From assembly GCA_025558095.1 (NCBI GenBank), contig JAIVFI010000017.1:62001-126000 (forward strand): a stretch of DNA of 64,000 bases, in the 5' to 3' direction. Of this stretch, positions 5,995 to 63,082 are shown piece after piece. Each line of letters starts with the position of its first letter. The first letter of the stretch is position 1. Below the pieces are notes generated by a model. That model was given only the letters and a program-made list of their open reading frames with translations, did no database searches and was not told the DNA's origin. The stretch is from Hyaloraphidium curvatum SAG 235-1. Taxonomy: Eukaryota > Fungi > Monoblepharomycota. The translations under genes were made by a program, and so were the position numbers.

Positions 5995-6662
5995 CACCGC
6001 GCCCACATGCCACGCTTATCCGTCCGACAGAAAAGGCGCGCAAGTGAACCATCAGCCGAGGCATTGCGCGCGCGTGCGTGATGAGGAGAAGCTGAAGCAG
6101 TATCGGACTCGATTCCAGCTGGACCAAAGCGTGCCGGCCGCGGACATCCTCCCGATCTCCTTCGAGACTCTGGGCGCTTGGGGCGAGCACCTCGTCCCTC
6201 TGATTGACTGGCTTGCAGGAATCACCCACCCCCCGAAGTGCGACGCGCAGGATCGCTTCTACGACTTCAACAACCGGCAGGCCTTCTTTTCCGCGCCTCG
6301 TGGCGGCCGGCGGGGCTCGCGCTCCGGACGGGGGGGACGGCTGCGCGGCCATAAAGCCGGAAAAGTCCCTTCCACCAGCGCCACATCCCCGCGCCCCACA
6401 AGTAGAGTCAGTGTCCGTTCGCGCACCGATGTAGAGTCACAGCGGTGCCAGCGAGGCCAACGCCTACACCCGGCTCTCGATTGCCCTGCAGAAGGGCAAC
6501 CACGAGCGCCTCTCCAACTGGGTGCAGAAGGCCCGCATCGGCCGGCGATCGTCGGTCCCGCTTGACGGGGCCGTCGGGGGTGGGGGAGCGGGCGTAGGGG
6601 ACGGGGTGCGGGCAGGGATGGGCTCGGCGGCGGAGACGGGGGACGTGGAGATGGGGGACTAA
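5995..6662 (+). mobile_element. 3' fragment of a non-LTR retrotransposon restriction-like endonuclease domain (CRE/R2-group-like), interrupted by a 166-bp insertion
   Basis: Reads CARVRDEEKLKQY...ILPISFETLGAWG...RQAF. After removing 6287-6452 it continues in frame as EANAYTRLSIALQKGN..., stop at 6660-6662. K..KY, P...ET.G.WG and RLS.ALQ.GN are typical of the RLE C-terminus. Confidence 0.75.
6403..6451 (+). repeat. 49-bp hairpin repeat, copy 1 (right end of insertion 6287-6452)
   Basis: TAGAGTCAGTGTCCGTTCGCGCACCGATGTAGAGTCACAGCGGTGCCAG; near-identical at 22460, 62278 (reverse) and 63034. Confidence 0.95.
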
Positions 6663-7029
6663 GCTATCCGAGGAATGTGCTGGTATCCGCGTGTAGAGAA
6701 AGGATACCATACACAACGCTCGCGTGTCGGGCTCGTGTGCGTGTACAAATCAATGACCGCTGCCGCCGCCTCGGCCGGGGCTTGCCCGCACGCAACGCCT
6801 GAAAAAGGATGTCATTGCCCATGGCCCGCGCTATTTGAATTCGGGCGCGAAGGCGAGCCGTGTAACTACGGTGCCACCAAACCCTCATAAAGGCAAGGAC
6901 CGCAACAAGGATTCGACAAGGATTCGTCGAAACGCGCGATGATCGTCCTTCAGTACATATCCCCTCGGAACGTGGACCGCGCTTGTCGATCGCCGCTCCA
7001 CGCCGTGCTCGATCGCGCAGGCTTCTCCT

Positions 7030-7365
7030 CCTCGGTCGCTGCTGGACGGAACTGGACAGTGTTCGGCCGAACCAACATCGTTCCACATCACTCCAGCTCG
7101 AAAACCATGTCGCCATTCCGGTAAGAGACCGCGCTTCCTCGCTTCCGATCCAAGCCAAGCCCGATCAGGCCGACTGTCCCATCGGCCGATCCTGGGTGGA
7201 ACCGGACCCATCCTCGGCCCAGCAAAAGCACCGTTCCGCATCTTTCCGGCCCGAAAACGATGCAGCGATTCCGGTAAGGGACCGCGTTTCGTCCCGGCCT
7301 CCGATGTCTGCGCCCGCGCTGGCCGGCCCCAGCCTGGGTCGGTCCCGGACTGAACTGGACACATC
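7030..7365. repeat. Degenerate tandem repeat, about 150-153 bp period, about 2.2 copies
   Basis: ATTCCGGTAAG(A/G)GACCGCG at 7115 and 7268; GGTCG..C.GGAC.GAACTGGACA-like motif at about 7034, 7183 and 7336. Confidence 0.7.
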
Positions 7366-7558
7366 CCCGGACGACCCGGCGTTGCTAGGCGTCCTTTCAG
7401 GTCGAACTCGCTCCTCGATTGCGGCGACGGACCGCGCTCCTCGCGCTCGGGATGCGCATTTTCCCGCGCGACACGTGCACCCACCCCACCCACCCCACGC
7501 AGCCAGGTCCGAGCAACACCAGCTCCCCACCGACGCCCTCCCCTCCCAACACGCGCGC

Positions 7559-8456
7559 CTACGGTTCGCCCCCGTCCTCCCGCGCGAGGTACGCCCACCT
7601 CACCGCAAAGTTCACGAACGTCCCCACGAACAGCACCGCCATCAGCGCCGGCGGCCCCTTGAGGTCATCGTACGGCATCCGCACGCGCTGCCGGATGCGG
7701 TGGCCCCGCCACAGGAAGAGGATGAGGCCGTAGAGCATGGTGAGGAGGGAGAAGAAGGTGAAGATGAGGCCTGGCGGGGACGGGGCGGTCAGCGGTGGAG
7801 CGGGGGACGGGGGAGAGGAAGCCAAACCGGTTATCTGGGCTATCCGGTCGCCGTAGTTGAGGAGGGTGATTGAGATTGTGGTCAGGATGACGGCCTGGGG
7901 TGGAGGGGGTGACGGAATCAGACACCCGATGGAACGCGACGGCCCGACGCGTCGAAACGCCCCAGCAGGCCGCCAGGATACCCACGTAGTGCATCCAGCC
8001 CAGGAACGTCCGCTCGTTCGCGAACTGCACCTTCGGCTCCACGCGCACGGGGCTGATGATGGTCTTCTGTGTCTGCAGGCCCGGCCTGAACGACAGCGGC
8101 GGCCCCTGGCCGGCCCTCCGCTTCCGCTGCCCGGCCTGCGGGCCCGCCGGGGCCGGGTCTTGCCCCCGCGGCACGCCGACGGTCTGCCCGCCGCGCACCA
8201 CGCCCGCGCCGGGGCCCGTGCGCCAAAAGTCCTCGTCCTGCTGGCGCTGGTACACCGACGGCGCCGTGACGATCGACGCCCAGCGCGAGAGGATGTCGAG
8301 CGTGCCCTGCAGCGCCGAGCTGCGCGCGGACGACGGCGACGGCGGGGGGCGGCCGCCGCCCGGCAAAGCGCCGATGGTCACCGCGGGCGGCGCTGACGCG
8401 GGCGCGCCGCGCGTCGGCGAGGACGGGCCCGCGCGCGCGGACGAGGACGCGCTCAT
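7559..8456 (-). CDS. Vtc1-like DUF202 membrane protein (vacuolar transporter chaperone subunit), two introns
   Basis: PVRVEPKVQFANERTFLGW, then exons ILTTISITLLNYGDRIAQITG and LIFTFFSLLTMLYG...PYDDLKGP. Confidence 0.85.
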
Positions 8457-9884
8457 GGTCGCCGCGGCCGGGGGCTCGTGCGACGGGATGTGGCGAAGGG
8501 CAACGTCCCCGGCAGCGCCGCGCAACCCGAGGCACCCCAGAGGCAACTCGCCGCTGGCACGCATCGCGGACCGCCAGACGGACCTGGAGAGACGCGTTGA
8601 TGCTATCGACCGGGAGCTGAGGCACGACAAGATGGATTCCATCCTGCTGGCTTTTGCTGCCTTCAGGGGGCCGGTGGTCCTGTGGTCCTCCCAGCATGGT
8701 TAGCCTACGTCGCTCGCTTTGGCGAGGGAGCAGATGCGATATCCTGGATCGGCATAGTAAGCACGTCTTCGCGTCGGTCCCCACATCGTACAAGATCGGG
8801 ACTCATGGGATGAGATTTAGCGCAGCCTTTGCGCTCCCCGCCTCGAAGCCCAAAAAGCGACGCCAGGCCCATGACGGAGCCGCCGAACCCCGCGCCGTGG
8901 CACCTTCCTCTTGTCGGGCTACGCACCTGGCAACCACTACGAGCTCCTTGTCGTCGTCACGGAAGCCAAACTCAAAGGCCACGACACGCCGCAGATGGCG
9001 GCCCCGTGTAATCGTAAATAGTGGTACTTCGAGGAACTGCGGTCCGCGTTCGGGGGAGGCAGGCATACGCCGACGTGGCCTGTCATGGTGGATCGAGTTG
9101 GGCGCCGATCTATTCATCCAATCTCTCCCATATACTTCCACATAGATAATGACCTCCTCAATCCACGAAACCTACGTCTCGCTTCTGCATGACGGCTCGT
9201 CGATCCACTTTGAAATGTCAGGGGCATACCCTCGGTCCGTTGCTTCATTGGCCGTCGCGTAGCTTTCCCATCCTATGAATAGCCATCCAACAGGGAAGGA
9301 ATCAGGCCGGTCCTCTATCGCGTGCAATGCTTTCTGCCTCGGTCGTTAATGCTGGTAGTTGAGGTCAAGTCCGATCTTGTCCCGGACGGGGACAGTCAGC
9401 GGACGACTTGAGCCCCGACCGCACGAGCACAACAACCTCCAAAGCAAACACCCACGCAACCTCGGACAGCCCCTTCTCAGCGTACCGGTGCCGCACGAGA
9501 GACTCAAGGCGCACTCTCACGGCCCCTGTTGGACGATTTCGGCTATTGAACCCCTTGAGACGTCGCTCACCGACCTGCCGCTCCCTCCCCCCCTGCAACC
9601 TCTGTTTGCTCGTCAACACTGCTCGCGGGGAACCCGCTCTCGACTTTCCACGGCCTAGGTGAGTACTCGATCGGCGTCAACAAGGGTACGCCAAGAGTTC
9701 TCTCGGCGCGCAATGGGTTCGTGGTCAGCCCGGGCACCTGATTCTGGTAGGTGTGTTTATCGGCAAACGTCCTTCCGAAAAAGGCCTAGGGAGCTTTCGC
9801 GTGAGAATCTTGGCGTGTGATTGCTGCGGGATCGACTGAAGCTCGGACGATCGAGACCACCTTCACGAACAATAATTAACGTCG

Positions 9885-12120
9885 ATGGCCTCACTCCCGG
9901 GCGCCCATCGCGCCCTCATCCGCCCTGGCGGACGCGCCCTTTTGTCGTCCATTGCCGGCCGGGCGGCCTTTGCGGCGGTGCGGCGCGTGGAGCGCGTCGC
10001 AGCCGGCCTCAATGTTCCCGTCGCTGCGGTGCGGAGCGCCCCACCGCGCCCTGGGAGGCCCAACAGCGGCCGCGGGGCGCGGTACTTCTCATCTCCTGTT
10101 CCTGCACCGGCCAACGGATTGGACAATCTCCGCAGGGTGCTCGAACGCGCCCGCGGGAAGCGGATACCTCTCGCCAAGGTCGCGGACGCGGTCTGGGACG
10201 CTTACACCGCCCTCGGATCGCCCGAGGGCCTGACCGAGGAGGATGTGCGGGATGTAGCCTATTTCATCACAGCACACGCGATAGCGGAGCAGGGGAAACT
10301 GCGGCAAGGTTTAAAGGACCGGACCGAGGCCCAGCGCCGGACCGCGAAGCTCGTCGACGAGGCGAACGTCAGGACGCGCCGCCTCCTTGTCGATGCTGCG
10401 CGAAAAGGTGGCATTGCGATCGATGAGAAGGCTGTTACTTGGTTCATCCAAGTGAATGACCGACTTCTGGTGTGAGTGCTCCTTCACGGCCTCCTTCGCC
10501 CCCGTTCCGCGTGGCCACTGACCTCGATCCATTGTCGGCAGCTCCTATGCGGCGTGCAAAGAACTGATGGACTTCCTGCGGCTGGAGTGCGGGGTAACCC
10601 TGGACGTACGGCACGTCAATACCCTGGTCCGCAACGTGGCGCACGGCGGCAACTACACGGCGTTCCTGAAGCTCCTGCACGAGGGCTTGACAGCAAACGC
10701 GATTTCGGTCGTGGACGTCTATACCGTCAACTTGTTCCTGAAGGCCGTTGCCGAGGCGTCGCCGGCCACGTCTGAAGACCTGGAAGGGTATCCGAGGCGA
10801 CAGACGAGCGTCGCGGATGTCGCTGTTCCTCTGTGGGCTTTAAACAAGGATGACCCAGCGATTCGGTCCGGGTCGGCACAACGGGACGCCTTGGACCCGC
10901 TGGAAGTGGACCCGGACCCGGAAGCTGCACTGCGCGCTGCCATCCTGAGCGGTCCAGACGTGGGGATCACGGACCTCTGCGCCCCGGGTATGCCCCAGGG
11001 CTCGGTGACGCCGGTGCGCAAGGTTCTCCAGCTCCTGTCTTTTGCCGCCGCCCGCCATAGGGAGGGGCAGCGAGGCATCGTGGATACTTACACTTGTGCC
11101 GCCGCGGCCGAGGCTGCCAAAACCTGGAACCATCCCCGGCTTGCCCGCGCCGTGGTCGAGGTCCTTTTGGGTGACCCTTTTGGAGTGTCTCCCAATGCGG
11201 TGCTCTTCAGCATCCTCCTCGCGGAAGCTTCCGACGGGCGGGACTCTGAAGCCGGCGACGAGCTGCTCGCGCGGATGCGGCGGCTGCGTCTCGAACCACA
11301 CCTCGACATGTTCAACACCATGATCCGCTTCTACGCGCGTACGGGAAGGCTGGCTCTGGCCCGCGACACCGTCAAGGAGATGGTGGCCGCTGGACACAAG
11401 CCGGACGACGTGACGGGGTTGGCCCTGCTGGAGGGTATCATCATTGCGGAGACCACGGTGGAAGACGTGAAGCGGACGATGGACGTGCTGGCGGGGGCAG
11501 GGATTGCGATTACGATCATCCACTGGAGCAAGGCATTGCACCACTTCCCCGCCCGGGGGGACCTTCAAAGCATGGAACGTATCTGGAACGACATGCCCGT
11601 CGCGCCGAACGAAATAGCCGTCGCCACGTGCGCAAACGCCTACGACAAGTTCGGCAGCGCGGACCAGCTCCTTGCCTTCCTTGGCGGCGCGCCGAGGCAG
11701 TTGCTTTCGACGTCGGCGACGTGGAGCGCTGCAATCCAAGCGTTTGTCCGGCAGTGGGCCGACTCAAAGGACGACAAGTTCGGCGACCTGGCTTTCGCCC
11801 TCTGCGGTGCCGTCCTGGACCGGGCTCCCGTCGATCCGGCCGCGTTGCCGCGCGGAACGGACGACTTCCCGTTCGCCGGACTGCAGCCCCCCAAGCCCAT
11901 GGCGGGGCTGCTCCTGGTCGTCTTCAGCAACATGTGCGGGAGGTTCCGCGGCGAACACCTGCGCATCCTGGAGGACAAGGGGCGCGCCTACCTCGTCTCG
12001 GAGGGGTACCCGGAAGCTCGGAACATGGATGCCAAGGAGATGCACGGGATGCTCGAGCGATCTGGAGGAAAGAAGCGCCGCGCCGGCCTGGAGGACGGCG
12101 GCGGCAGGCGGGGAGCGTGA
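9885..12120 (+). CDS. PPR protein paralog 2 (probably mitochondrial); intron 10472-10541
   Basis: Arg/Ala-rich N-terminus resembling a presequence. A GTGAGT...CTGAC...CAG intron joins ORF 9885-10475 in frame to the 517-aa ORF (LLV-SYAACKELMDF). Tandem PPR motifs. Confidence 0.85.
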
Positions 12121-13076
12121 CCGTCCTGGCGGTCCGGGGTTGCGCTGAAGCTGCGCCGTCGTGTGCACAGTCGGTCCGGGGGCTTTCGACTACCGAGGAC
12201 GGCGGGCCTGATTGCTGAGGGCGACTGCTGCCGACGACCGGATGGCGGCATAATTCGCCTGTTTGCCTTTCACCGCGGTAGAGAGGCCAATCATTCACTC
12301 AAGGGCGGATCAGCCTCTTCCGAATCACCAAAACGCGATCGCACCAGTCTCCTGACGCCGAGTTCGGAGTTGAAGGGTCTTGGCTTCCACTCGACGGGTC
12401 CACGGCGTCCCATGGAATGATCGGCATTAGGGAGCGTGAAGCGCTGTCCGACGCGGTCGAGGCGGGCCTCTGTCCCCTTGCGGTCGATCGGTTGTCCCCT
12501 GGCCCCCGTTTTGCGTCAGCACGCAATCCCGACCGACAATCGGACGGTCCCTATACGGTCCCTAAGCGGCACGGCCCTGCGCCGCACGGCATTCTGCCCG
12601 GCGCCCAGCCTCGCGGTTCCGAGGTGCCGGTCGGGAAAAGGCGATCGGGGCTTCCCGGGGCGTCCGTCTGGCTGGGAGTGGCGTCCGGGTTTGGGGGCCC
12701 GGTGGGGATGGACCCGGTTGGGAGGGACCTCTTGGGACGCGGGGACGTGCGGAGGGTGTGCATCTCGCAGGTTCTTAGCCCGCACCATGGAAGCAGGGTG
12801 GTGAGGGAGCTGTGAGACGCATGGGCAGGGCCGGACAAGGGAACGGGGGCGCGGTGAGGTGTGCGTCCCCGCCGATCCCCGAAATTGGAGAGGGAATGAG
12901 CAGCTTGCAGGGCGGCTGGCTGTGTCCCCTGTTTTCACTCCCGTTTCCCTTCCCTGAGCAACGAACGGCCAGTAGAAAGCCGGCTCAGAGCCCGGCGTAC
13001 CTGCACAGGGCCCTCCATTTCCGAAACACCACCCGGGCAGCTCAGGGAGCCCAACCCCTGAAGAAGCCCCGAAGCC

Positions 13077-14348
13077 ATGGACACCGGGCCGCTCGCCCCT
13101 CCCGAAGGCGGGCCGCGCCGCGCACACACGTTTCCGCGGGCGGTGGGCGCGCACGGAAGCCCGATGGACCTGTTCTCGTCGGGCGGCCGCACGCCGGTGG
13201 TCGGCGCCGCAGGGCAGCCGGCCGACAAAGGACCCCGGCCGCCCACCGCCGGCGTACCCTCCTCCCCGCTCGTCGTCCCGCCGTCCCCCGCGGCGTGGTA
13301 CCCGAGCCCGGCCGCAAGCGAGCCGTCGGGGACGCTGCCCGCTGGGCCTCTGCCCGCCCCGCCCGCGCTCCCGCCGTATGCCACGAACCCCCGCACAAAG
13401 CCAAGGGACGCTCCGCAGCCGGGCGACGACGCCGAAGCACTGGACCTGGCAGAGTCGCTGCTGTCCCTGCGGGCATCCAACCCGGCGCCCCAACAGCCTC
13501 AGCACGCGCAGGCTGCCCAACGGTCGCAGACTGCCCCGGAGCCGTCCCGAACTGCCTTTGCCAACTACGTACCCCCTTCGTGCGACGCATTTCCGCGCTC
13601 GGTCGACCTCCGGGCGCCGCAGCTGCAGCCCGCCCCGCCACCCCGCAAGCTGCCGGACTCGCCGCAGCTGCCCGCTACCCCCAAGGTGCTTGCCTCGCCT
13701 CCTCTACCGGCCCCGACCGCACAACCCACCGTCTGGCCTACGCCACCCGGCTCGGTGGCCCCCGTGGCACCCGTGCAGCATGCATACGCACCTCCAGCGC
13801 CGATCCCGGGCCTCCCGCCCCCCTCGTTCCTGCCCCAGACGCCCTACTCCCCTCCCATGCAACCCCTGGCTCACCCGCAGGCATACTCTCCCTACGCACC
13901 TGCAGCCTACTATCCCCCCGCCTACCCCACCATGGGTATCGCCGCATCCTACCCGCCTTCCGCCGTCCCCCTTCCCGTGGACCCCGCGGCCGCGCACCGC
14001 GCCGCCCTGGCCGCGCAGCAGGCCGCCGCCGCCGCGTCGCAGCACGCCGCGCTGGCGCACCTCCGCGCGCAGCAGCAGCAGCACGCCATGGCGGTGCAGC
14101 GGGCCGCGATCGCAGCGCAGCAGCAAGCATCGATCGCGCAGCAGCAGCAGCAGCAGCAGCAGGCGGCCATGGCCCAGCAGCAGCAGCAGGCGGCCATGGC
14201 GCAGCAGCTGCACCAGCGCCAGGCGACCTCGGCCCCGGGGCGAGCGTTCCCGTGCAGGGGCGGGTGCCCCGCGGCGTTCGGCGGTTGGGTGGAGAGGGAG
14301 GTGCACGAGCGGAGCTGCGTGGCGGCGCGGGCCAGGGCGGCGGGGTAG
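13077..14348 (+). CDS. Pro/Gln-rich protein with C-terminal C2HC-type zinc-finger-like motif (putative transcription regulator)
   Basis: 423-aa ORF; poly-Q/A tract; FPCRGGCPAAFGGWVEREVHERSC. Confidence 0.6.
   Translation: MDTGPLAPPEGGPRRAHTFPRAVGAHGSPMDLFSSGGRTPVVGAAGQPADKGPRPPTAGVPSSPLVVPPSPAAWYPSPAASEPSGTLPAGPLPAPPALPPYATNPRTKPRDAPQPGDDAEALDLAESLLSLRASNPAPQQPQHAQAAQRSQTAPEPSRTAFANYVPPSCDAFPRSVDLRAPQLQPAPPPRKLPDSPQLPATPKVLASPPLPAPTAQPTVWPTPPGSVAPVAPVQHAYAPPAPIPGLPPPSFLPQTPYSPPMQPLAHPQAYSPYAPAAYYPPAYPTMGIAASYPPSAVPLPVDPAAAHRAALAAQQAAAAASQHAALAHLRAQQQQHAMAVQRAAIAAQQQASIAQQQQQQQQAAMAQQQQQAAMAQQLHQRQATSAPGRAFPCRGGCPAAFGGWVEREVHERSCVAARARAAG
14136..14190 (+). repeat. CAG microsatellite encoding poly-Gln
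   Basis: Runs of gcagcagcag... separated by a repeated gcggccatggc unit. Confidence 0.85.
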
Positions 14349-14605
14349 CGCGCCGCTGGGGGCGGTGGGCTGGAGGATGCATCCCCGCTGCCGCCCGGCC
14401 GAGCACCTCCAATCGGAACCTCGCCTGCCCGTGGACGCGACGGCTGAGCGGATCAGGATGGTGCCCGTGGCAGCCGCGGATGTATAGTTCTGGCATATAT
14501 TTGCTCGAGCCGGAGCACTTCTGCGCCGCTCTGCAGATCAGCCTAGAATGAGACGCGATCCCATCGCACAGCTGTCGCCGTCCGCATCGCAGCCCACCCG
14601 CCCGG

Positions 14606-16837: not shown

Positions 16838-16909
16838 CGCCGTTGTTTGTTTGTGAAGGAGGAGCGTGGGCGCGGGTTGCACCGCGGCCTTCTAGGACTC
16901 CGTCTCCAG

Positions 16910-18523: not shown

Positions 18524-19051
18524 TGCGATCGATACACAAAACCAGAATGGCTGGGCCCCCGAGCGCTTCACGGAAAGTTTGCCACACGATCGGCTGCCAT
18601 CGGCGGCTCAGTATACCCGCTCCGATTCTGCGGGGGATTGTCTTCCACCGCGCCGCGCGGCGTTGGGAACTTGCCGCCGCACCCCGACACCTTTCTCTGC
18701 ATCAACGCATCCGAATGCAGCTCAGCATATTCACCGTCTTCTCATCCGCTGCTCCGAAAAGGACTTTTAGTGCTCGGTCTGCAATATCTTCGCAGCGGTT
18801 GACATGATCATAGGTGGGGCGCGGGTCAACTCGGTTTCAGCCGTCGGGCTGTCCGGCGAAAGGGTCTTGGCCCGCCACCGCGCCGTCCCGAGCCCCGCCA
18901 CCGCCCCACCGCCGGACATTTAAACCCGGCAGACGAAGTGTCGGTGTTCCGAACCCCGTGCATTCATAAAGCCTCGGATCCAGGCCCACTGCTGCGTCGC
19001 ATCCGTCGGAACTCGTGCAGTACCGCACTTTTCATCCCCGCAGCTTCGAAC

Positions 19052-20572
19052 ATGAGCACCGCAACAGCTCCCGCCGCAACATCGCCCGCCGGTGTTCCCG
19101 GCACGCCCGCAGCACCGGCCGCCCCGGCGCCGCACCCCGGCGACCGGTTCACGGACAGGAAAAAGGCAGGCATCCTGGCCATCGTCGCCGGAGCCTCCAT
19201 GATGGCCATCTTCGAGGGCGCCGTCTTCTCGCCCGCCATCCTCCGCGTGCAGGAGGACCTGGGCACCACCGAGGAGCTCTCGAACCTGTCCATCACAGCT
19301 TACACCATCTCGACCGCCATCGCGCCGCTCGTCTGGGCCACGCTCAGCGAGCGCTTCGGCCGCCGCCCCATCTACCTCTACTCCCTGACCGTCGCAGCAC
19401 TCGCATCCGTCGCCCTCATCTTTACCCAGGAGCTCGGCGTGGCATGGCTCATCGTCTGGCGGGTTTTCCAGGGCGCCGGCGCGTCCGCGGCCTTTTCGGT
19501 CGGCGCGGGCTCGATCGCGGACATCTACCGCGTCGAACAGCGCGGCCGCGCCATGGGCGTCTTTTCGCTCGGACCCCTGCTTGGCGCGCTCGCTGGTCCC
19601 CCGATCGGCGGCGTGCTTGCCCAGACCGTCGGGTGGAGATTCATCTTTGTCGTCATTGCCGGCATCACCGTCTTCCTCCTCTCGATCATCTTCTTCCTGC
19701 TCCCCGAGACCCTCCCGCCCCGTGCCGAAGGTGCCAAAGCGCCGCGGATCAACCCCGTCGCCATGTTCCCGCAGCTCCGCTACGGATTCGTGCTCGTGCC
19801 CGTCGCCGCGCAGTCGCTCACCTGGGGCGCGCTGTACGCGCAGAGCTCGATGATGGCCCGGCAGATGAACGCCGCATACGGCTGGAACTCTGCGCAGGTC
19901 GGCCTCTTTGGGCTGATCCCCGCCGCCGGCAACATCGCCGGGGGCCTGCTCGGCGGCACGATCGCCGACCGCTTCGTTAACCGGCCGCACCCCGGCAAGC
20001 CACCCAAGCTCCCCGAGACCCGCCTCTACGTGCTCTTCTTCGCCGTCACTATGAGCTTCGTCGGCCTTACCAGCTTCGGATGGATCGTCGAGACCCGTGC
20101 CCCCTGGGCCGCCGGCATCCCCTTCCAGCTCATCTGGGGCTTCGGCATGCTCTCCGCCATGGTTCCTTCGTCGACGTACCTCGTGGACCTGTACCGCACC
20201 CAGGCGGCATCCATGTCGGCCGTCTCGAGCCTCGTCAGGCTCACGGTCGCCGCGCTCGCCCCTGTGGCGGCGCCGGCGATGGAAAGGACGATGGGGACCG
20301 GGGGGATGTACACGTTCTGGGGAGGCTTGCTGGTGGTCGTCGTCGTTCCGGGGGCGTGGTGGCTTACAACGAGGGGGTGGAAGTACAGGTTGTCGGTCGG
20401 GAGGTGGGCCGCGGAGGTGCAGCCGGCGGCGAAAGGTGCGACGGACGAGGAGATGGGGCTAAAGGACGGGGAGGCGAAGGTTGGGGCGGATGGAGACGGG
20501 GACTCGGCGGCAACGACGGATACCACGGAGGAGATGTTGGCGGTGGAGATCGCTCGGCCGGACAAGTCTTAG
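19052..20572 (+). CDS. MFS drug:H+ antiporter (DHA1-like)
   Basis: Motif A WATLSERFGRRPIY; WRVFQGAGAS; GSIADIYRVEQRGRAMG; motif C GPLLGALAGPPIGG; TYLVDLY. Confidence 0.92.
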   Translation: MSTATAPAATSPAGVPGTPAAPAAPAPHPGDRFTDRKKAGILAIVAGASMMAIFEGAVFSPAILRVQEDLGTTEELSNLSITAYTISTAIAPLVWATLSERFGRRPIYLYSLTVAALASVALIFTQELGVAWLIVWRVFQGAGASAAFSVGAGSIADIYRVEQRGRAMGVFSLGPLLGALAGPPIGGVLAQTVGWRFIFVVIAGITVFLLSIIFFLLPETLPPRAEGAKAPRINPVAMFPQLRYGFVLVPVAAQSLTWGALYAQSSMMARQMNAAYGWNSAQVGLFGLIPAAGNIAGGLLGGTIADRFVNRPHPGKPPKLPETRLYVLFFAVTMSFVGLTSFGWIVETRAPWAAGIPFQLIWGFGMLSAMVPSSTYLVDLYRTQAASMSAVSSLVRLTVAALAPVAAPAMERTMGTGGMYTFWGGLLVVVVVPGAWWLTTRGWKYRLSVGRWAAEVQPAAKGATDEEMGLKDGEAKVGADGDGDSAATTDTTEEMLAVEIARPDKS

Positions 20573-20670
20573 CAAGCTTAGCTGGCTTGGCGAGCATTGC
20601 GCGGTTGTACAGTGCCAGGGTTGCAATGCGTGATGTCGTATCTTTGGGAAGGATCTCGGTGCATGAAAGT

Positions 20671-22359: not shown

Positions 22360-22445
22360 TAATGACAGGTGTCAGATCATGCACATCTAGCTTCGGTATA
22401 GAACCCCAACCCGACCCATCCATACGGTCCCAGCCCCCATCCCCC
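22360..22445 (+). repeat. Duplicated segment B (copy of about 24815-24907, downstream of the reeler gene)
   Basis: TCAGATCATGCACATCTA.CTT.GGTATAGA.CCCCAACCCGACCCATCCAT.CGGTCCCAGCCCC is shared by both sites. Confidence 0.9.
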
Positions 22446-22459
22446 CCAATCCCACAATG

Positions 22460-22512
22460 TAGAGTCAGTGTGTGTCCGTTCGTGCACCGGTGTAGAGTCA
22501 CAGCGGTGCCAG
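22460..22512 (+). repeat. Hairpin repeat, copy 2 (53 bp, extra GTGT)
   Basis: TAGAGTCAGTGTGTGTCCGTTCGTGCACCGGTGTAGAGTCACAGCGGTGCCAG; overlaps the last codons and stop of the monooxygenase. Confidence 0.95.
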
Positions 22513-24018
22513 CGAGGAAAGCCCTGCCACGTACTTTTCCAGCTGCGCCTTATCTGCCGGAGTGCCCCGCCAGCCCACGATCCCATCCGGTCTGACCAAG
22601 ATCCACCCTGCCTCCTTACCCCACGTCTCTTCAGCCCGACCGGCAGCATCATGGATCCAAGGCACCTCTTCCTCTGGGGGATCTTTCCCGACGACGTACG
22701 CGAGGTGACGAAGCGCCAGTCCCGGGCAAGGCAGAGCTCCACCGTAGCACATCAGCGTCCAGTTCGGGTATCGCATCAGCTCCACGAGCCGGACCTGTCC
22801 CATGGTGCCGGGCCTTTTGAGCTCGTCGATTGAATCGAGCCGATCGCCCGGCTGCGCACCCCGATGGCCTTCAGGTATGCGGCCGGCACTAAGGAAACCA
22901 AGTCCAGCATAGCTGATGAACAACTGCGTGTCCTTCCTGGCCGCTTCCGCCGCGTCCGGCTCGCTTTTGCCGTCCATGCGGGCCGAGGTGAGCCCAACAA
23001 CGTCCAGGCCCACGGCGTGCCGTTCGTTGTGGTAGCTTTCCAGAAGTGTTTCTCCCCCGTGCCCCCGCAGGACCGAGACCAGCTTCCAGGCAAGGTTGTG
23101 GGCGTCCTGCAACCCCGTGTTCATCCCGAGACCGCCGATCGGGGGATGGATGTGAGCGGCGTCTCCGGCGAGCAAGACGCGGCGGTCGCGGTACCGGGGC
23201 ACGAGGCGGTGACTGATCTTGTAGAAGCTCGTCCAGCGGGCGCTGACGATGTTAAGGTCGGGGGGCAGCTTCTGCCGGAGCTGGTCGACCGTTGGCGGCG
23301 AACTGCCGGTTTCCTCCTCCCAAAGGTCCCTCGGCGCCTGCATGCTCACGCGGTACCGCTTCGGGTTGCCAAAGATGGGGATGGCGACGCAAAGCCCGAA
23401 GTCCTTGCGGATGATTTTCCATGCGTCGGCGTGCTCGCGATCCTCCCAATCCAGCTCAACGTCGCCGAGCATGAATTTCGGCTCGAACCTGCCGCCTTCG
23501 AACGGTATCCCGAGTAGCTTCCGCACGATGCTGTGTGCTCCATCGCAGCCGACCACGAACTGTGCCGAGATGGTCGTGCCGTCCGCGAGCACGCAGGTCA
23601 CGGAGTCCCCTTGCTGCTCCAGCGAGACGACTTCGGTGCCGTACTGCACGCCTCCGCCGTGCTCGACCAGCGAAGCCTCCAGCACGCGCTCGGCCTCGTA
23701 CTGCGACAGGGAGAACGCGCCGTACGGCAGCCCGTCCGGTCCCGCCGGCGGCACCTCGAGTCTCGACACCCTCTTCCCGTCCACGACCGTGTTCAGCGCC
23801 CTGAAAAAAAGGCCCCGGTCTAGGGCGTCGTTCAGGATCCCAAGCTGGTCAAAGATCTCAAGCGTGCGGGGAGTAATTCCCAGCGCCTTGCAGAATTCGT
23901 TGCGGGAAGAGCGGCGGTCGACTATGGTGTGGGGGACGGCCGAGCGCGCCAGGAGGTTGGCGAGGAGGAGGCCAACGGGGCCCGCGCCGACAATGAGGAC
24001 CGAGGTGCGCTCGTTCAT
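22498..24018 (-). CDS. FAD-dependent aromatic monooxygenase (FAD_binding_3, PheA/TfdB-like), intronless, bacterial-like
   Basis: VLIVGAGPVGL; VVGCDGAHSIVRK; RVLLAGDAAHIHPPIGGLGMNTGLQDAHNLAWKL; LLESYHNER; C-terminal LVRPDGIVGWR. Confidence 0.93.
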   Translation of the reverse strand: MNERTSVLIVGAGPVGLLLANLLARSAVPHTIVDRRSSRNEFCKALGITPRTLEIFDQLGILNDALDRGLFFRALNTVVDGKRVSRLEVPPAGPDGLPYGAFSLSQYEAERVLEASLVEHGGGVQYGTEVVSLEQQGDSVTCVLADGTTISAQFVVGCDGAHSIVRKLLGIPFEGGRFEPKFMLGDVELDWEDREHADAWKIIRKDFGLCVAIPIFGNPKRYRVSMQAPRDLWEEETGSSPPTVDQLRQKLPPDLNIVSARWTSFYKISHRLVPRYRDRRVLLAGDAAHIHPPIGGLGMNTGLQDAHNLAWKLVSVLRGHGGETLLESYHNERHAVGLDVVGLTSARMDGKSEPDAAEAARKDTQLFISYAGLGFLSAGRIPEGHRGAQPGDRLDSIDELKRPGTMGQVRLVELMRYPNWTLMCYGGALPCPGLALRHLAYVVGKDPPEEEVPWIHDAAGRAEETWGKEAGWILVRPDGIVGWRGTPADKAQLEKYVAGLSSLAPL

Positions 24019-24237: not shown

Positions 24238-24590
24238 ATGGGGACCGGGGGAATGTACACGTTCCGGGGAGGCTTGCTGCTGGTCGCCGTCGTTCCGGGG
24301 GCGTGGTGGCTTACAACGAGGGGGTGGCAGTACAGGTTGTCGGTCGGGAGGTGGGCCGCGGAGGTGCAGCCGGCGGCGAAAGGTGTGATGGATGAAGATG
24401 GGCTGAAAGATGGGGTGGATGGGGACGGGGACTCGGCTGCAGCGATGGAGGCTACGGAGTAAGAGGTGTTGGCGGAGGAGATCGCTCGGCCGGACAAGGC
24501 CTAGGAAGCTTAGCTGGCTTGGCCGGAATGGCAAACATTTGTACAGCTACGGGGTCGTCTACTTATGCATGTTTTTGGAACACTTCCGTC
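24238..24590 (+). pseudogene. Duplicated 3' end of the MFS gene (segment A', copy of about 20291-20655)
   Basis: MGTGGMYTFRGGLLLVAVVPGAWWLTTRGWQYRLSVGRWAAEVQPAAKG is nearly identical to the MFS C-terminus; it has an early TAA and the similarity extends into the 3' UTR. Confidence 0.9.
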
Positions 24591-24919
24591 GGTGCCTCTG
24601 CAGATCGCTTCGTGGTCCACCCTCAGCCTAGATCTACGCCGCTCGGCTCTCCTTCGCAGCAACATGGCAACGACCGGGTTCGCTGCTCAGAGCGTATTTG
24701 GTGCAGCGCATGAGCTCAATCGTGATCGATGTCCCAATCCTTGGCCGCGATATTGCATTGACCGTGGTGTGCAAGCGCAATTTGCACGGCGGCGCGCAGA
24801 CGAGGCGGCAGTGAAATGACAGATGTCTGTAGAATCAGATCATGCACATCTAACCTTGGTATAGACCCCCAACCCGACCCATCCATGCGGTCCCAGCCCC
24901 GATCCCCACCCGATCGCCT

Positions 24920-53477: not shown

Positions 53478-53508
53478 CTTGTAGTGACATGATGCGGAAT
53501 ATGCATTA

Positions 53509-53574: not shown

Positions 53575-53647
53575 ACAGGTGAAGATCTGATGGCCGAACT
53601 CCTCATGGGATCAGCCCCACCCGACGCTTCGAATCTTTCGCACTTCA

Positions 53648-56450
<2,803 letters not shown>

Positions 56451-56454
<4 letters not shown>

Positions 56455-59400
56455 TTTCCCTTGCGCTTAGCGAAGAATAGGAGGTACGCGTCGTCCAACG
56501 GGATCTTTTCCGCCTGAACCACCTTGTTGTCGTTGAAGAGTGCCCAGCCGTCGCCAGACTTGACGTGCGCCACGTAGTGTCCGGCATGAACAGACGTGCC
56601 CTTGTGGTTAATGAAAGCCAGAAGATCGTAGACGGCGGGCCTGGTGTCGTCTACGTCCGCCGCCGCGGCGGGTTCAGCGGCATCCGCTCCCGGGTCGCCA
56701 CCGTCGTCCGGATGATTGAAAAGCCACTCGACTGCCCGCTCCACGTTGTTGGACTGCAAAGCCGTTCAGCAGTGACAAGAGGAGACAGTGTAATGAACCC
56801 ACCGTCTCCCTCAACGCGCGCTTCGCATGTCCCTCGCTGAAGCCCATGTCTTTGAGCATGTCGACGTCGCCTTGGTTGAAAGCGCCTCCGCCGCCGCTCT
56901 CGTTTTGCTCCGGAATCGGGTCGTCCACATCTGGGGTCGCCACCCGATTAACACGGTTGATGGAGGCATCGAATGGAAACGCTTACCTGTAGCATCCATG
57001 TGCTCGAAGATCCAGTTTGTCGCAGCATCAATTCCAGAGTTGCCCGTGTTGATTATAGCCCTCTTGCACCGATTCTCGGAGAATCCCATGGCCAGAAGCT
57101 GGTTCAAGGTATCTTGATCGATGGCCGGCCCCGCAGACGGCGCAGCGTCCTCTGGCAAGGCATCTTCACCGTCCTGGAGGGCCCTTCCGCGCCAAGCTTC
57201 CATTTCCAAGGAGGTCTGGGGCACCGAGACGGGTACAACAAGCTTCCTGGGCACCCAGTTCTCCAACTTGAACCTCTGGAGCTGCAAGACGAGGATCTCG
57301 GGGAACGTTGCGAAGGAAAAGGACCTGCGAGGGTCAGCGTCCGCACACGGCCCTGTCACGCTGAACCTACTTTGCAGCGGTGGTCGTCGCTTGACAGCGC
57401 GGACACTTGAACTCGACCACTTCCGGTGCTGTCATGAGATCCAGGCATTCGCTCAACAAGACTTCCTCGAACTCCTCGCCAGCACCGTCTTCCTTCTTCT
57501 TGCGGAGCGGTACAGGTACGTCCACGAGGGTCTGTGACGTTTTCGACACGCGCGCGCCCGCGCAGTTTTGGCACTGTAGCTTCTGCTGCATTTGGAACTT
57601 GAACACCCGGGTCGGATCGACGTTGTTGGGACGCTCCTTCATTTCCACGATCTTGAGCAAATGCTGCAGGAACTCGCCCGCGTCCTGCAACGGAGAGCTT
57701 TGTGTCAGGGCGCCTTAGGAGTGGAAACCGAGTGCCGCACCTGCTGCCGCATGGTGGAGAACTCCGCGTGATCCTTTCCGATAAGCTCCTTGAACATGGA
57801 AGGCGCGATGCCATCCTGGCCGTGGATTTCTCCGTCGCTTGATTCGGTCGGGAACGAGTAGCGCCCGCTGGCAAGACCGTCGGCGATCTTTCCCATTTGG
57901 CAATGGAAACACTGTCCGTGTCGGTTGTGGCAGACTAAAGGATGTTGGCTCGCCACCTCAAGGTATCTGCGACGACAGTCGTCAGCAAAGAGGGCTGCCT
58001 GCACTCGGGAACGGACCTGTTCGATATGTCGTCAATATGGAACACCGCTTGCAGCACAGATGCCATGTAGCAACTGCAGTGGCGTTCGCAATGAGACTGC
58101 TATAGCCGGTAACGATGGCAGGCCAAAACGAACTCACCTGTTCCCAAGATTCTTCAGGCCAGTGTAGCCGGGACCGAAAAGCGGTTCCAGCTGCTTCCCG
58201 TCTTCCGTGGTCATGCTGAAGTCGAACTTCAGGTTTTGCTCCAGTTGCTGATGCAGTGGTCGTCAGCCTTTCGTGCTCCAATGTCACGAGGCTGACCGCA
58301 CCAGTTCCGCCATCGACTTTTCAGTCTTCTGCTGCGTTCCCACTTCAATGCCGAAAGTCGCGAGATGCTGCGCCAAGTTAGAATCCAACACTCCGTCGTC
58401 ATCCAGATAGCAGTAGAGATCTGTTAGTCACGCCGGTTAGTCCGTGAACTCGGCGGCTCGATCATCGCGCGCCGGGAACCCACCGGCAGTTCCTTCGGGA
58501 GTGATCGTGCCCAGCTTGCAGGACACTGGATGGCCGGTTGCTTCAAAGTGGGCGATCCCATGGCCATTCCCTCCGCTTCCGTCGTACTGCTTGCGCCCAC
58601 AGCCGACGTTGCCGCACGTCAGGCACAGCCATAGGTTGTTCTTCAGCTCGCAATCGTTGCAATGATCTGGCGGACGTGTGAGACCACTTGCAAAACGCAT
58701 AGTGCCGGCCCCCGTCAACGGACCCAACACTTTGCCGCCCGAAGTCTGAACCAGCGACCGAGTGTGTGCGCACTCTTTCGTTTCCTCCTCCCATGCTTTG
58801 ACTTCCGACTGCTTCTTTGCTGACATCGCAGATAGGACGCCAGTCACCGTGCCCGCGATCTGACGAATTGATCACAACGTGAGCGGCCGGGGCGAGGGAG
58901 TAGGTTTCAACCCACATTCGGGTGAGTCTTGTCGACGACGATGCCGCACGTCAGGCACTTTGCTTCAGTCACGAAATCGTAGAGCTCTTCTTCCGGCTGC
59001 TCGACGATGACGAGCTTCGCCATCTTCTGAGGCGGAGGATTATCGTCCTATGCCGCAAATCAGCTGGAGGTCTGCCGTAGCGTGGAGCAATCCTCCGTAC
59101 CCTCTTCGGCTTCGGCACGCGCTTGATGTTTAGGACCACGGGATGCTGCATGTTCTTGGCGTGGAGGGAGCCGTGGTTCCGCTCGTTCTCCAGGCACCCT
59201 CCATTGAAGCACGTCAGACAGACATCGACCCCCTGGCTCAGATCCTGGTTCGTGGCACGCCCAGATCGCGGTCCGTCAGATCAGGCACACTGCAGAATCA
59301 CGATGCGACACGGACCTGCGAGTCAAAGCATTGCTGTGGAGCAACGTTTCGTTCCTTTAGCTACCCTGAACGCGTCGGCCACGGAACGGCCGCCTACCGT

Positions 59401-59475
59401 GCACTCCTCCTTGTAGACCGGAGTGGACAGCGTGGGCGGACTGAATCGCTGCTCTGCGATGTGTGGGCAGGCCAT
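56451..59475 (-). CDS. UBP14: Ubiquitin C-terminal hydrolase 14 / USP5 (isopeptidase T), many introns
   Basis: VYKEECT; ZnF-UBP NLWLCLTCG.VGCGR...GGNGH; KLGTITPEG; GYTGLKNLGN; UBA domains; HKGTSVHAGHYVAH...FNDNKV. Confidence 0.95.
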
Positions 59476-59590
59476 GTCTCCCGCCAGACGACAAGAATGT
59501 AATGCCGGCAGCCTGCACGATCTGTGTCTCTGGGCCTGTCTCAAAAGCTCAAAAGCTGCGTCTCAAAACTCCGGCGTGCCGCCCTGGAGA

Positions 59591-62258
59591 ATGTCCTTTT
59601 CGTTCAAAAAGGCCCCGGCTAAGGCCCGCCGTAACTTTCGGGTCGGCGTTGAACGCGATGGATCGCCGGAAGAGACGGCGGAGGGTTCTGGACTCGAGTC
59701 GGGGACACCGGCTGCGCAGGACGAGGGCGAAACCAGTGCCGTCAAGCGGCGAGACCGAGGAAACAAGAAGGAAGGGGGTCGGAAAGCGGGCAAGATGACT
59801 TTTGGAGCCGACGAAGTCAGTGCTGGTCGCTGCAGCTGCCCCACCCAAGGTTGATTTCTTCGACGCACTGTGACAGGAGCCTGCGGAAGTGTTCAAGCTT
59901 GTGAAATCCGCCTCGCCCGCCCCATGGCCTCAGGGAGCAGAGTCGCTCCGAATGGATTCGGGGCGCGAAGGTCACGGAGGGACCCGCTACGACGCTGAAC
60001 ATCTGGAGGAGCTGCGCAAGAGCATCAGTGCCCCACCGGCTCTCCAACCGAACCGATATTCGGCAGATCAATCAATGGAGGACGTCGCGGACACCATTCC
60101 GGATGACGCAGCGGTGCTGGCAGCGCGTAGACTGCGGGAGCAAAGGCGTGCTGCCGGCGAGCGCGAAGAGAAGGAAGATTTCATCCCCTTGGATGGCAAG
60201 CCAAAGACGAGGGTGTGTGATGCCGACGCGGCGACATGAAGCAGGAATGAATTTCAGTCCTGCAGGAATCTCGACTAGTCACCGAGGATCAGCTGGTGGA
60301 GGACGAGGAAGAGTTCGAAGATTACTCGGGAGACAGGATTGCGTTCGGAGCGAAGACGGCGAAGCAACGGAAGACGGAGCGGCGACGCGAGATTGAAGCT
60401 ACCTTGCTGGCAAGGTCCGCTGCCTGAGTTTTGTTGCCTCGCCCCCGCCGCTAATTGAGGAATGTTGCTCCCCAGGGATCAATCTGAATCGGATGAAGAC
60501 CTTGAGGAAGTGAACGGGGAACACGGGGCGCAAACCGGCATTTTTGGGCTTTCGGCTCCGCCTCTTCTGGACAATGGCCGTGCAGAGGATTCTGCGATGC
60601 CAAGTGGCGCTGTGCTGGCATCAATGGGGGCGGTAAACGCGCGGCTCAATGGCCTTCTGCTCGGGAACGATGAGATTCTTGCGGCGCTCAGGCAGAAGAC
60701 CACGGAGCTTTCCTTGGAACTGGCGGCCGCCGAGGGAGCTTCTGGGGGCCTCTCGAGGGACATGGAGAGCTCCGGCGATCGGTACAACTTCTTCCAGGAC
60801 CTGCGGATGTACGTCAACAGCCTTGCCGACTTTTTCGACGAGAAAGTGAGCCTTCACTGGGGCTGCGCACAATATCTGGGCTGATGTCTTGGCTCAGCTC
60901 CCTCAACTCATCGCCCTCGAAGACGAGCACGAAGCCTATGTTGCCAAGCTCGTTGCTCAGCGCAAGGAGGCTCGCTACGCTTCAGTCGATGCAGACTACG
61001 AAATCATCACGGGCTTTGCCCCAAGGCGTCCGAGCGTCGAGCAAGAGTTGGAAGCTCGAGATCCTGATGGTAAGGACCAGGCGAACCCGTACCCTGACGG
61101 GGTCGCAAGCTAATGGGGCGCCGTCAGGGACGACAATCGAGCGACTGGAAAAGTCGCACCGTCATTTGTTTGACGATAGCTTGGAATCGTACTCGCAGTT
61201 GCAGAGCATCCGCGACACCTTGATCTCCTGGAAGATGCGATTTCCCGGAGATTACGAGCGAGCCTTCGGTTCGCTCAGCGTACCAGGTGCCTTTGAGCTG
61301 GCCGTGCGCCACGAGCTGTTTGGCTGGTTTCCTTTCCAGGTGCGAGTGGATTTCAAACGCTTGCTCTCGGAGCGCGCCGCTAACGACGTGATCTGTACAG
61401 GCTCTGGTTCGTCTCGAGGACATGGAATGGCACAGAACCGTGGCGAGCTTCGACAGCGCATATGCGCACGAAGACGAGGAGCCCCACGAGATGGAGGTTC
61501 TCAACGCCATCGTCAAATCCGTTTGCATTCCCCGGCTCAAGGCCCGTCTGCCGATGTTTGATGTCTGGTCAGCGTCGGAAACCAGAAATCTGGCGTCTCT
61601 TCTGGCGGAGATTCGAGATTACGTTGCGACCGATTCACCGGCATACAAGGCAGGCCTGATCGCTTACAAGCAGTCACCGTTGTGCTCACAAGTTCTTCAC
61701 GTAACAGGGAATCGTCTCCATCGTCAACGATCTCTTCGCGGCTGCGGTTGGGGAATGCGCAGAGCGTTACGGTGTGGAGGCGCCGCATCTTCAGACATCG
61801 TCCCCTCCCTCGCCAGAGGTCCTGGCCGCGCGGACCCGCTTTTTCGAGGGCCTGTTTCCCGTGAGTGATGCAGCCATCGTGCATCGGTGTCTTGTGCTGA
61901 CTGCTGGTCTAGCTCGTTCAAAATGCAGTGACCTTGAGGCGCTACCTGGGCAGCAGCGCGGTAACGGAGTTGTGTTCGGGGTTAATGGGGCGAGTAGTGG
62001 TCGTTGTCCTTTCGAGCGTCACACCGGCTTCCTTGAAGCATGACATTGGACTGCTGCAGAAGGTGGGAGGACTTTTGCTCAGCCGGTATCGCGCACTGAC
62101 GTTCCTCGTAGGTTTGCGCGGCAGTTCAACCTTATGGTTCCGAGGAGGACAGGGCATCCATGAAGCATGCTTTGCGGAAATGGACGTTCAAACTCCGCCT
62201 GCTGTCGTCGTCTCGACCGGACCTGCTGGACATGATTGATTCCCTCGATCTTCTCTGA
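59591..62258 (+). CDS. GCFC-domain spliceosome-disassembly/transcription factor (PAXBP1/GCFC2/Ntr2-like), many introns
   Basis: IPDDAAVLAARRLREQRR...EDFIPL; RYNFFQDLR.YV..L.DFFDEK; LFDD....Y........WK.RFP.DYE.AF.SL..P; M.WH; WS..ET. Confidence 0.82.
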
Positions 62259-62277
62259 CATTAGATTTCCCTGGTAG

Positions 62278-63082
62278 CTGGCACCGCTGTGACTCTACAT
62301 CGGTGCGCGAACGGACGCTGACTCGCTCGGGGCCGACGGCACATTGTTTCCCCCGCGTCCCTCGCTGCGCTCGCCCTCGCGCCCTATGGGCCGGCGCGGG
62401 CAATTCCGCCAACCGTTCATCTCTCGCCGGGGGCCAGACGGGAGCCCGGCGGGCGCCGGCTGGAGCACCGGACATCCGAACGGATGCATTTGGCGTAAAA
62501 ACCGCCGCGGGGAAATGCACTGGTAGTGGGGGACCGGCAACCGGGGTGGGGACAACCGGGTCGGCGGGCGGCGGAGGGCACCCGAGGGTCCGCCGCGGCC
62601 TCCGAAACGTGCGGAAATATCGCGCGCAGCCGTTGGAACGGCCGGCGGGGTCGTACGGTGTGCTGCCTGCGCGCGATGGGCGGCGGGAGCCGGCGGGTCC
62701 GATGCTCGCCGGCGGCCGCCTTCCCCCACCCGGAGCACGATGCCGGCCTGCTTCCAACGCGGCGGCGCTCTCTTCCGGCATTTTTCCGCGCGGACCGAGG
62801 GGCCGTGACCTTTCTCGAGCGAACCAATTCGAGTTTGGTGTTGAGGCCGCACTGATTTCGGTCCACGTCCTCTCTTTGGTCCACGGCTCCCTCCCATGCC
62901 CTCCAAGACGGAAAACGGGGAGAATAGGACGATGGACAAGAAACCCTTCTTTGGGTTTAAATCGTCCATCGCCCGACGACGAGTATTCGTATATCTGGTT
63001 GGGGTTTCTTGCGGCGGCGCCCGGCTATGCGGTTAGAGTCAGTGTCCATTCGCGCACCAATGTAGAGTCACAGCGGTGCCAG
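62278..63082. mobile_element. Putative non-autonomous element (~805 bp) bounded by inverted copies 3 and 4 of the hairpin repeat
   Basis: 62278-62324 (CTGGCACCGCTGTGACTCTACATCGGTGCGCGAACGGACGCTGACTC) is the reverse complement of 63036-63082 with three mismatches. No credible coding content; no TSD visible. Confidence 0.75.

Follow-up and report, generated by a model that had tools for sequence, protein, structure and literature searches.

A dispersed repeat family with one fixed hairpin end and variable starts in the fungus Hyaloraphidium curvatum, tentatively read as a SIDE/SINE-like retroposon

The window analysed here, a stretch of 64,000 nucleotides from the fungus Hyaloraphidium curvatum SAG 235-1 (contig JAIVFI010000017.1, positions 62,001 to 126,000), carries four copies of a hairpin-forming motif of about 50 nt. 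Judged across the whole genome (a 31.9-Mb assembly of 55 contigs), the motif forms the 3' terminus of a repeat family that is lineage-specific, non-coding and non-autonomous, with members at most about 1.3 kb long. Almost all copies end at the same base, start at widely different points and lack a target-site duplication (TSD). The reading that we favour, tentatively and at rather less than even confidence, is that the family is a non-autonomous retroposon resembling short internally deleted elements (SIDEs) or short interspersed elements (SINEs), copied by target-primed reverse transcription (TPRT), beginning at its 3' end, with the help of a partner that we did not find.

A 21-mer taken from the motif, GTAGAGTCACAGCGGTGCCAG, occurs 49 times genome-wide when up to three mismatches are allowed (31 occurrences are exact), and a profile of the last 66 nt finds 52 copies. 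A first-pass annotation of the window had proposed a mobile-element system from the four local copies alone, and the genome-wide search confirms that the motif belongs to a dispersed mobile repeat. More than 90% of the profile matches (48/52) reach model position 65 or 66, that is, the terminal ...GGTGCCAG(C). Their 5' starts are scattered, with 37 at model positions 2-5 and the others at 6-36; the shortest copies, of 31-32 nt, consist of the hairpin and CAGC alone. The exact 21-mer had no match in metagenome and viral contig collections.

Inward from this shared end, copies resemble one another over very different distances. In an all-against-all BLAST comparison of loci (30 of 3 kb and 20 of 10 kb), the similarity extends for 47 to about 940 nt in copies with a 'type A' body (e.g. 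L042) and up to about 1270 nt in 'type B' (L021/L022). Lengths measured for shorter copies include 31, 32, 37, 44, 47, 63, 67, 107, 116, 118, 171, 200 and 272 nt, and for longer ones 496, 501, 527, 539, 588, 685, 714, 855, 924, 937 and ~1270 nt. At the 5' side the break is abrupt, its place in the body is unrelated from copy to copy, and no motif is common to the flanks. Several body types exist (A, A' and B), and the interiors are mosaic. One internal deletion is common to L045, L037 and L043, whose 5' truncation points differ, which indicates that truncation occurs at each copying event. Some pairs of copies are 99-99.6% identical over 200-490 nt, and the family is therefore young. The first-pass annotation had pictured a minimal end of ~49 bp mobilising variable adjacent DNA; this picture does not survive, as the inner DNA is mostly the family's own body, no longer than 1.3 kb and randomly truncated at its far side.

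In the window, the exact 21-mer is found exactly four times, at 6431-6451(+), 22492-22512(+), 62278-62298(-) and 63062-63082(+), and 100 shuffles gave no match even with three mismatches. The stem GCACCG/CGGTGC, the doubled TAGAGTCA and the sharp outer stop, all of which had been reported for these copies, are present in the sequence as described. The four copies are:

6299 to 6452, plus strand: copy 1, a diverged, 5'-truncated family copy of 154 nt (model positions 5-66)
22450 to 22513, plus strand: copy 2, a 5'-truncated copy of ~64 nt with a 5-nt GTGTG insertion
62277 to 62801, minus strand: copy 3, a 5'-truncated 'type B' body of ~525 nt with its 3' terminus at 62277
63022 to 63082, plus strand: copy 4, a 5'-truncated copy of ~61 nt ending ...GGTGCCAG (model positions 4-65)

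The conserved terminal ~50 nt of copy 1 occupy 6403-6452, and its upstream part aligns to family tails with a local score of 33 (shuffles, 20.1 +/- 3.2). Over ~425 nt the body of copy 3 matches the interiors of three other copies (L021, L022, L014) at 87-93% identity, and the terminus of copy 3 is followed on the minus strand by TACCAGG. The earlier statement that the inner sides of the copies are unrelated thus needs correcting for copy 1, a 154-nt copy, and for copy 3, which holds ~525 nt of the family's body. A spacer of 220 nt, unique among the DNA compared, separates copies 3 and 4, which are arranged head to head; copy 4 has G in place of the terminal C. They had been read as a pair of inverted termini. 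This pair (62277- / 63082+) is the only case of outward-facing ends resembling terminal inverted repeats (TIRs) among the 52 copies, the others being solo, tandem or tail-to-tail, and its flanks (GTA/GAG) are unequal. Copies 3 and 4 are therefore not the termini of one element; they are two independent truncated copies.

Conservation climbs steeply toward the terminus, and the last ~27 nt are invariant in 30 copies. The terminal hairpin covers ~31 nt including the CAGC region, has a 14-nt loop and is subterminal, lying 4 nt from the end. Folded as single-stranded DNA, it reaches -12.3 kcal/mol in copy 1 (z -3.8) and -5.5 kcal/mol in copy 4 (z -0.1). Covariation is absent: the sole variable stem column is unpaired in 16/30 copies, with no compensatory change. 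Hence it is the conservation of sequence that is evident here, and conservation of structure is not demonstrable. The sharp stop at the terminus had been recognised correctly, with the final C assigned to the flank; as this C is kept in 34/35 distinct copies (...GGTGCCAGC), it is part of the element.

The clearest view of an insertion comes from copy 1, which splits a small conserved open reading frame (ORF) into two halves:

6074 to 6298, plus strand: upstream half of the split ORF, ending ...DFNNRQAFFSAP, with a match to protein P0001
6453 to 6659, plus strand: downstream half of the split ORF, beginning EANAYTRLSIALQKGNHERL..., with a match to protein P0001

Removal of exactly 6299-6452 fuses ...DFNNRQAFFSAP in frame to EANAYTRLSIALQKGNHERL..., and the frame is broken if the removal is shifted by one or two bases or runs from GT(6300) to AG(6451), the latter leaving two extra bases. 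In a phmmer search of 1.84 billion proteins, the upstream half matches residues 8-80 of P0001 (132 aa; E 2.4e-17, 52% identity), and by BLASTP the downstream half matches residues 79-106 (E 2e-11, 61% identity). The two halves are contiguous in P0001 to within three residues. This contiguity, together with the restored frame, means that a few bases at most were duplicated or deleted and that copy 1 is no intron; it is a clean 154-nt insertion at CCT^GAG, terminal C included. P0001 is the only clear homologue of the ORF, which is without a Pfam domain and is now probably a pseudogene.

Across the family, no consistent direct repeat of at least 8 nt links the 3' flank to the 5'-junction region (within 1.6 kb), and the mean length of the best short match is 3.56 nt over 16 mapped 5' junctions, versus 3.52 nt with flanks permuted between loci. 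Long-repeat search, permuted short-match test and copy 1 all agree with the earlier claim of insertion without a TSD. Tests for a restored ORF at 17 other copies gave no useful answer in this GC-rich genome, and no empty site was found for L042, whose left flank recurs on contig C25 and whose right flank does not. The target is biased nonetheless. Read after ...CCAG in 35 distinct copies, position 1 is C in 34/35, position 2 is T in 17, G in 13, A in 4 and C in 1, position 3 is A in 32/35 (background 18%) and position 4 is G in 19 and C in 12. Once the C is counted as part of the element, ^K-A-S (K, T or G; S, G or C) is left as the target. The flank rule is better given as C, then T or G, then A, then G or C than as the plain GAG noted earlier. 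A flank of the CGAG class lengthens the hairpin by two pairs.

Some copies carry host-derived DNA at their 5' side. Three type B copies, L021, L022 and one on contig C42 (G000:C42:424979-425352), share a start, the same ~250-nt fragment, which we take to be the His-box C-terminal end of a ubiquitin-specific protease (GHYVADV...W..DD), a reading without Pfam support. This ubiquitin-hydrolase-like fragment includes a stop codon, and a search at the DNA level found no parent gene. In L042 (G000:C15:233471-233980), a stretch of 501 nt stands before the type A body. It is 92% identical to C25:651181-651673, the locus of a CN-hydrolase gene (PF00795, E 2e-4), and comprises 288 nt of upstream sequence (promoter/5' untranslated region) plus the first ~70 codons of that gene. 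This similarity stops exactly at the 5' boundary of the 937-nt L042 copy, and on the other side of the copy the DNA is unrelated to C25. At the same boundary, L044 and L050 have a different 195-nt module in common. Such heterogeneous 5' modules are as expected from template switching or 5' transduction.

A comparable junction stands on the 5' side of copy 2 in the window, where two paralogous host segments can be compared:

22372 to 22449, plus strand: segment X, host-derived, abutting the 5' side of copy 2 and 90-91% identical to 24835-24915
24835 to 24915, plus strand: segment X', the paralogue of X, continuing into different sequence

The X/X' homology ends where copy 2 starts, and X' represents an 'empty' version of the 5' junction of copy 2. 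Two copies (L042 and copy 2) thus join a duplicated host fragment to unrelated DNA, in keeping with the suggestion of the first-pass annotation that the motif marks rearrangement junctions. The end of copy 2 also overlaps a minus-strand gene for an FAD monooxygenase (22498-24018) and supplies its last four codons and stop. This gene is intronless and encodes an FAD-binding monooxygenase (PF01494, E 1.7e-77). Nearby, the last ~280 nt of an MFS-transporter gene (ORF 18938-20572) and 28 nt downstream are duplicated 3.9 kb on at 79-94% identity, the pair lying at 20291-20600 and 24238-24532. The MFS duplicates and X/X' bracket a block that contains a 553-aa orphan ORF, copy 2 and the FAD monooxygenase gene, and the arrangement looks like a local segmental rearrangement.

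Tails also occur in tandem. At L031/L024 (G000:C2:895724-895838), a second tail of 44 nt comes after a full one, with TAG between them and once more at the end, and the tandem joint with TAG, at which the sequence goes back 44 nt, is also present in contigs of three sequencing runs. L044 has a degenerate tail, TAC and then a 95-nt copy, and in L033 the sequence TGCCAGCTAC flanks a 166-nt stretch on both sides. More generally, copies cluster: three pairs lie within 2 kb (0.17 expected, Poisson P ~7e-4) and six within 20 kb (1.7 expected). The region from 68 to 185 kb of contig C17, which takes in the window and reaches slightly past it, is a local hot spot, with five tail copies and a tail-less body fragment (C17:170251-170770) within 120 kb.

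Contigs assembled from three independent public runs (X1, X2 and X5) carry the motif with many different flanks, which rules out an assembly artefact, a concern raised when the motif was first described. Similarity of these contigs to the window breaks at 6403/6406 and at 6452/6456/6459, and their loose ends match the upstream flank of L046 and the downstream flanks of L042 and L031. No contig spans 5953-6314, a stretch that takes in the upstream half of the ORF split by copy 1. X1 contigs skip 69 nt (5297-5365) and 57 nt (7770-7826) with CT..AC ends; these stretches are short introns of minus-strand genes, one in a pentatricopeptide (PPR)-repeat gene region and one in a gene at 7665-8642. Since its contigs have spliced introns, X1 holds RNA. 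The summed depth of the motif bin is 8042 in X1, versus 16-340 in neighbouring covered bins, and 104 in the DNA-like run X2, versus 0.04-19 in other covered bins. Copies of the family occur in RNA, which reads on into the sequence beside them.

A fixed, nearly invariant end, a variable far end, subfamilies with common deletions and differing truncation points, the lack of a TSD, a target preference of 3 nt, chimeric 5' modules and the want of coding capacity together point to synthesis that starts from one end and then aborts or switches template. TPRT is the common process with this outcome, which is why we rank a SIDE/SINE-like retroposon first. From the anatomy we infer an RNA intermediate, TPRT and a partner of the reverse-transcriptase kind. 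In such a scheme, the family would spread through an RNA copy, which would end at or run through ...GGUGCCAGC. A reverse transcriptase would recognise the invariant 3' end (the ~31-nt hairpin plus CAGC) and would start DNA synthesis there on a nicked target, the nick preferring ^(T/G)-A-(G/C). Synthesis would often halt early, or switch to another RNA, before reaching the 5' end. The expected products would be copies with one common end base and starts anywhere (from 31 nt to ~1.3 kb), occasional foreign 5' modules and no TSD.

A fixed 3' end with graded 5' truncation is a classical mark of TPRT, and R2-type long interspersed elements (LINEs) are not known to give a regular TSD. The shared 3' end and graded 5' truncation of the present family place it, by this mark, with elements of the class without long terminal repeats (non-LTR; SINE/SIDE). 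In eels, UnaSINE1 and UnaL2 reportedly form a SINE/LINE pair of the stringent type, sharing a 3' stem-loop recognised by the reverse transcriptase. Our family is likewise non-autonomous with a conserved 3' stem-loop of a few dozen nt, and unlike SINEs of the UnaSINE1 type, which are said to have tRNA-derived heads for RNA polymerase III (Pol III), short 3' repeats and TSDs, it has none of these. The fusion of a host RNA fragment 5' of a truncated copy also recalls the template-switch chimeras reported for L1-type elements. Those chimeras are said to have poly(A) and TSDs, unlike the copies described here, whose host fragments are ~8-10% diverged, and the fusion may pre- or post-date insertion.

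The nearest published parallels are R2 and SIDEs. R2 forms 5'-deleted copies when first-strand synthesis stays incomplete (PMC4370867). For TPRT its RNA needs the 3' sequences only, and it has non-autonomous derivatives with internal deletions (PMC3414825). A SIDE derived from CR1 is also known (PMC6740152). The family resembles R2-type LINEs and SIDEs (PMC3414825, PMC4370867) in that the 3' end alone is the cis signal and 5' deletion is frequent, in the lack of poly(A), in precise 3' junctions with absent or minimal TSDs and in having non-coding, internally deleted derivatives. It differs from these elements, which are specific to ribosomal DNA and share a 3' end with a coding partner: its copies are dispersed, the target is ~3 nt and no partner was found. 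Unlike R2, it has no 5' ribozyme match in Rfam and carries chimeric host-derived 5' modules.

Several results weigh against a SIDE/SINE-like retroposon. Reverse transcriptase domains (PF00078) have 152 matches in the genome (150/176 candidates scored), and with positions compared by eye no copy has a scored candidate on its own strand in the ~6 kb upstream of it; the nearest on the same strand is 6.9 kb away, on contig C39. A profile search found no diverged terminus near any reverse transcriptase, so that the shared 3' end of a SINE/LINE pair is missing. Rfam at E<=1 gave no match at six loci, hammerhead and hepatitis delta virus (HDV) ribozymes included, and ARAGORN found no tRNA-like head at eight loci. 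The element has no 3' poly(A) or microsatellite tail. Among the carried fragments there is no case of intron loss, the CN-hydrolase fragment aligning in one piece, and the contigs reveal neither the RNA strand nor RNA 3' ends at the terminus. Finally, the local clustering is more typical of DNA transposons; along with the missing partner and the lack of direct proof of an RNA step, it is a serious weakness of this reading.

These searches also narrow the class. A SINE derived from tRNA, 5S or 7SL can be set aside for want of a Pol III head (ARAGORN, 8 loci; Rfam, 6 loci), as can a retroposon of the APE (apurinic endonuclease) type, for lack of a 3' tail and a TSD; only the R2-like, tail-less type is compatible. 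The motif is not the right end (omega-RNA scaffold) of a Fanzor/TnpB element: the zinc-ribbon domain PF07282 has 17 matches genome-wide, and 0/17 are both correctly oriented and no more than 15 kb from a copy, nor did the profile search place a diverged terminus near them. Nor does a Crypton (tyrosine recombinase) fit, as the 5' junctions are variable and do not repeat the K-A-S triplet. ORFs inside or beside copies have only host domains in Pfam (ThrE, exostosin, the CN-hydrolase start). The absence of a mobilising enzyme from the window, noted at the outset, extends to the whole genome, where no scored candidate is linked to any copy.

Among the competing explanations, the one we rank second, as unlikely, is a non-canonical, non-autonomous Helitron-like (rolling-circle) family in which the conserved end, with its hairpin and brief terminal sequence, would act as the 3' terminator; capture of genes would account for the diversity of the 5' parts, and faulty rolling-circle events for tails that are truncated or in tandem. 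It would account for the missing TSD, the subterminal hairpin 4 nt from the end, the definition of the family by its 3' end alone with mosaic interiors that hold host gene fragments, and the tandem tails of L031/L024, L044 and L033; and the genome does contain three Helitron-like Rep matches (PF14214; C2:541600, C35:92638 and C8:491059). Fungal Helitron2-like FoHeli elements share many traits with the family (PMC5148889): they too lack a TSD, have a subterminal hairpin at the 3' side, conserve the 3' terminus more strongly than the 5' one, bear multiple or tandem termini and capture gene fragments. However, FoHelis have defined 5' termini with asymmetric terminal inverted repeats, defined target words (e.g. 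TNAT/A) and Rep/Hel partners with the same termini (PMC5148889), and we found none of these here. The family has no common 5' terminus and at least four unrelated 5' starts. Helitron2/Helentron elements repeat their 5' terminus, inverted, upstream of the 3' end; here the type A start CTCGCAG is loosely like the inverted end CTGGCAC. The terminus is CAGC, not CTRR, and the first flanking base is T in just 17/35, with copy 1 at CCT^GAG and not at A^T or T^T. As for the hairpin, its loop spans 14 nt and its stem shows no covariation, the variable column being unpaired in 16/30 copies. None of the three Rep loci shares a contig region with a copy, and neither coordinates nor a profile search for a diverged end places a terminus near them. 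Canonical Helitrons are rejected on the same grounds: 5'-TC...CTRR-3' is absent (34/35 copies end ...GGTGCCAGC, with heterogeneous 5' starts), insertion between A and T is at odds with the first flanking bases counted above, and no partner was found, so that the first-pass statement that the termini do not match Helitrons stands. The continuous truncation series down to 31 nt is also unlike rolling-circle transfer from a required 5' end. That expectation stems from experiments reported for Helraiser.

Improbable, in our judgement, is a new one-ended DNA element whose conserved end is an origin or nick site for an enzyme of the HUH type or another kind. This is the idea of the first-pass annotation with its polarity reversed: strand transfer would start at the end, stop at a variable distance and carry inner DNA along. 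The single fixed end with a variable stop and no TSD would suit it, as would the preferred word beside that end (on the other strand S-T-M-G|CTGGCACC, reminiscent of the IS200/IS605 target word), the two TAGAGTCA repeats in the hairpin as putative binding sites, the local clusters and the two copies at junctions with duplicated host DNA. But no enzyme candidate is linked to any copy, TPRT explains all of this anatomy equally, and we know of no one-ended DNA system in eukaryotes besides Helitrons. Moreover, the inner DNA is mostly the same family body and not arbitrary flank, which indicates that copies descend from a few masters and do not arise by local read-out. The first-pass preference for an HUH or tyrosine-recombinase mechanism has no positive evidence and had overlooked the signature of TPRT. 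A shade less probable again is the absence of any dedicated system: fragments of complementary DNA or DNA from an abundant ~1-kb transcript with a fixed 3' end, captured at breaks or by a stray reverse transcriptase, comparable to break-repair patches or to retropseudogenes without tails. Such capture would naturally give a fixed 3' end, a random 5' end and no TSD, and the association with rearrangement junctions, the high summed RNA depth on the motif and the lack of a partner with the same end are all in line with it. Against it, body types A, A' and B and subfamilies with shared deletions are better explained by several masters that propagate than by a single source gene, the K-A-S flank bias implies a sequence-selective nick and not random breaks, and no single source locus was identified. 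The data contradict, and leave very little room for, an ordinary TIR/TSD transposon (a miniature inverted-repeat transposable element, MITE) or an introner-like family of spliceosomal introns ending in CAG. Copies 3 and 4 do face outward like TIRs, the element does end in CAG, which could serve as a 3' splice site, and GTGAGT is present in long copies. Yet there is one inverted pair in 52 copies, with mismatched flanks (GTA/GAG) and no TSD, as the first-pass dismissal of a classic MITE had anticipated. For an intron, removal of GT(6300)...AG(6451) shifts the frame that removal of 6299-6452 restores, contigs show no splice joint at copy 1 (none spans 5953-6314) and copy 2 lies antisense at the 3' end of a gene.

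The family is thus an unclassified, apparently young mobile repeat in a little-studied, early-diverging fungus. It disrupts genes, splitting a conserved small ORF and supplying the stop codon of a monooxygenase gene, and its position beside host gene fragments that have been duplicated means that it may influence how genes are built in this genome. We also consider, as improbable as the one-ended DNA element above, a mover not yet described for eukaryotes: either a trans-acting, HUH-like or other nickase working at the ~31-nt terminus, or reverse transcription independent of LINEs. Were this true, it would be fusing host DNA or RNA fragments to the element and seeding rearrangement junctions. 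If a partner is found, the ~31-nt terminus would be a compact recognition signal, and the family an instance of tail-less, TSD-less retrotransposition outside animals; if no reverse transcriptase is involved, a new mobility mechanism would be indicated.

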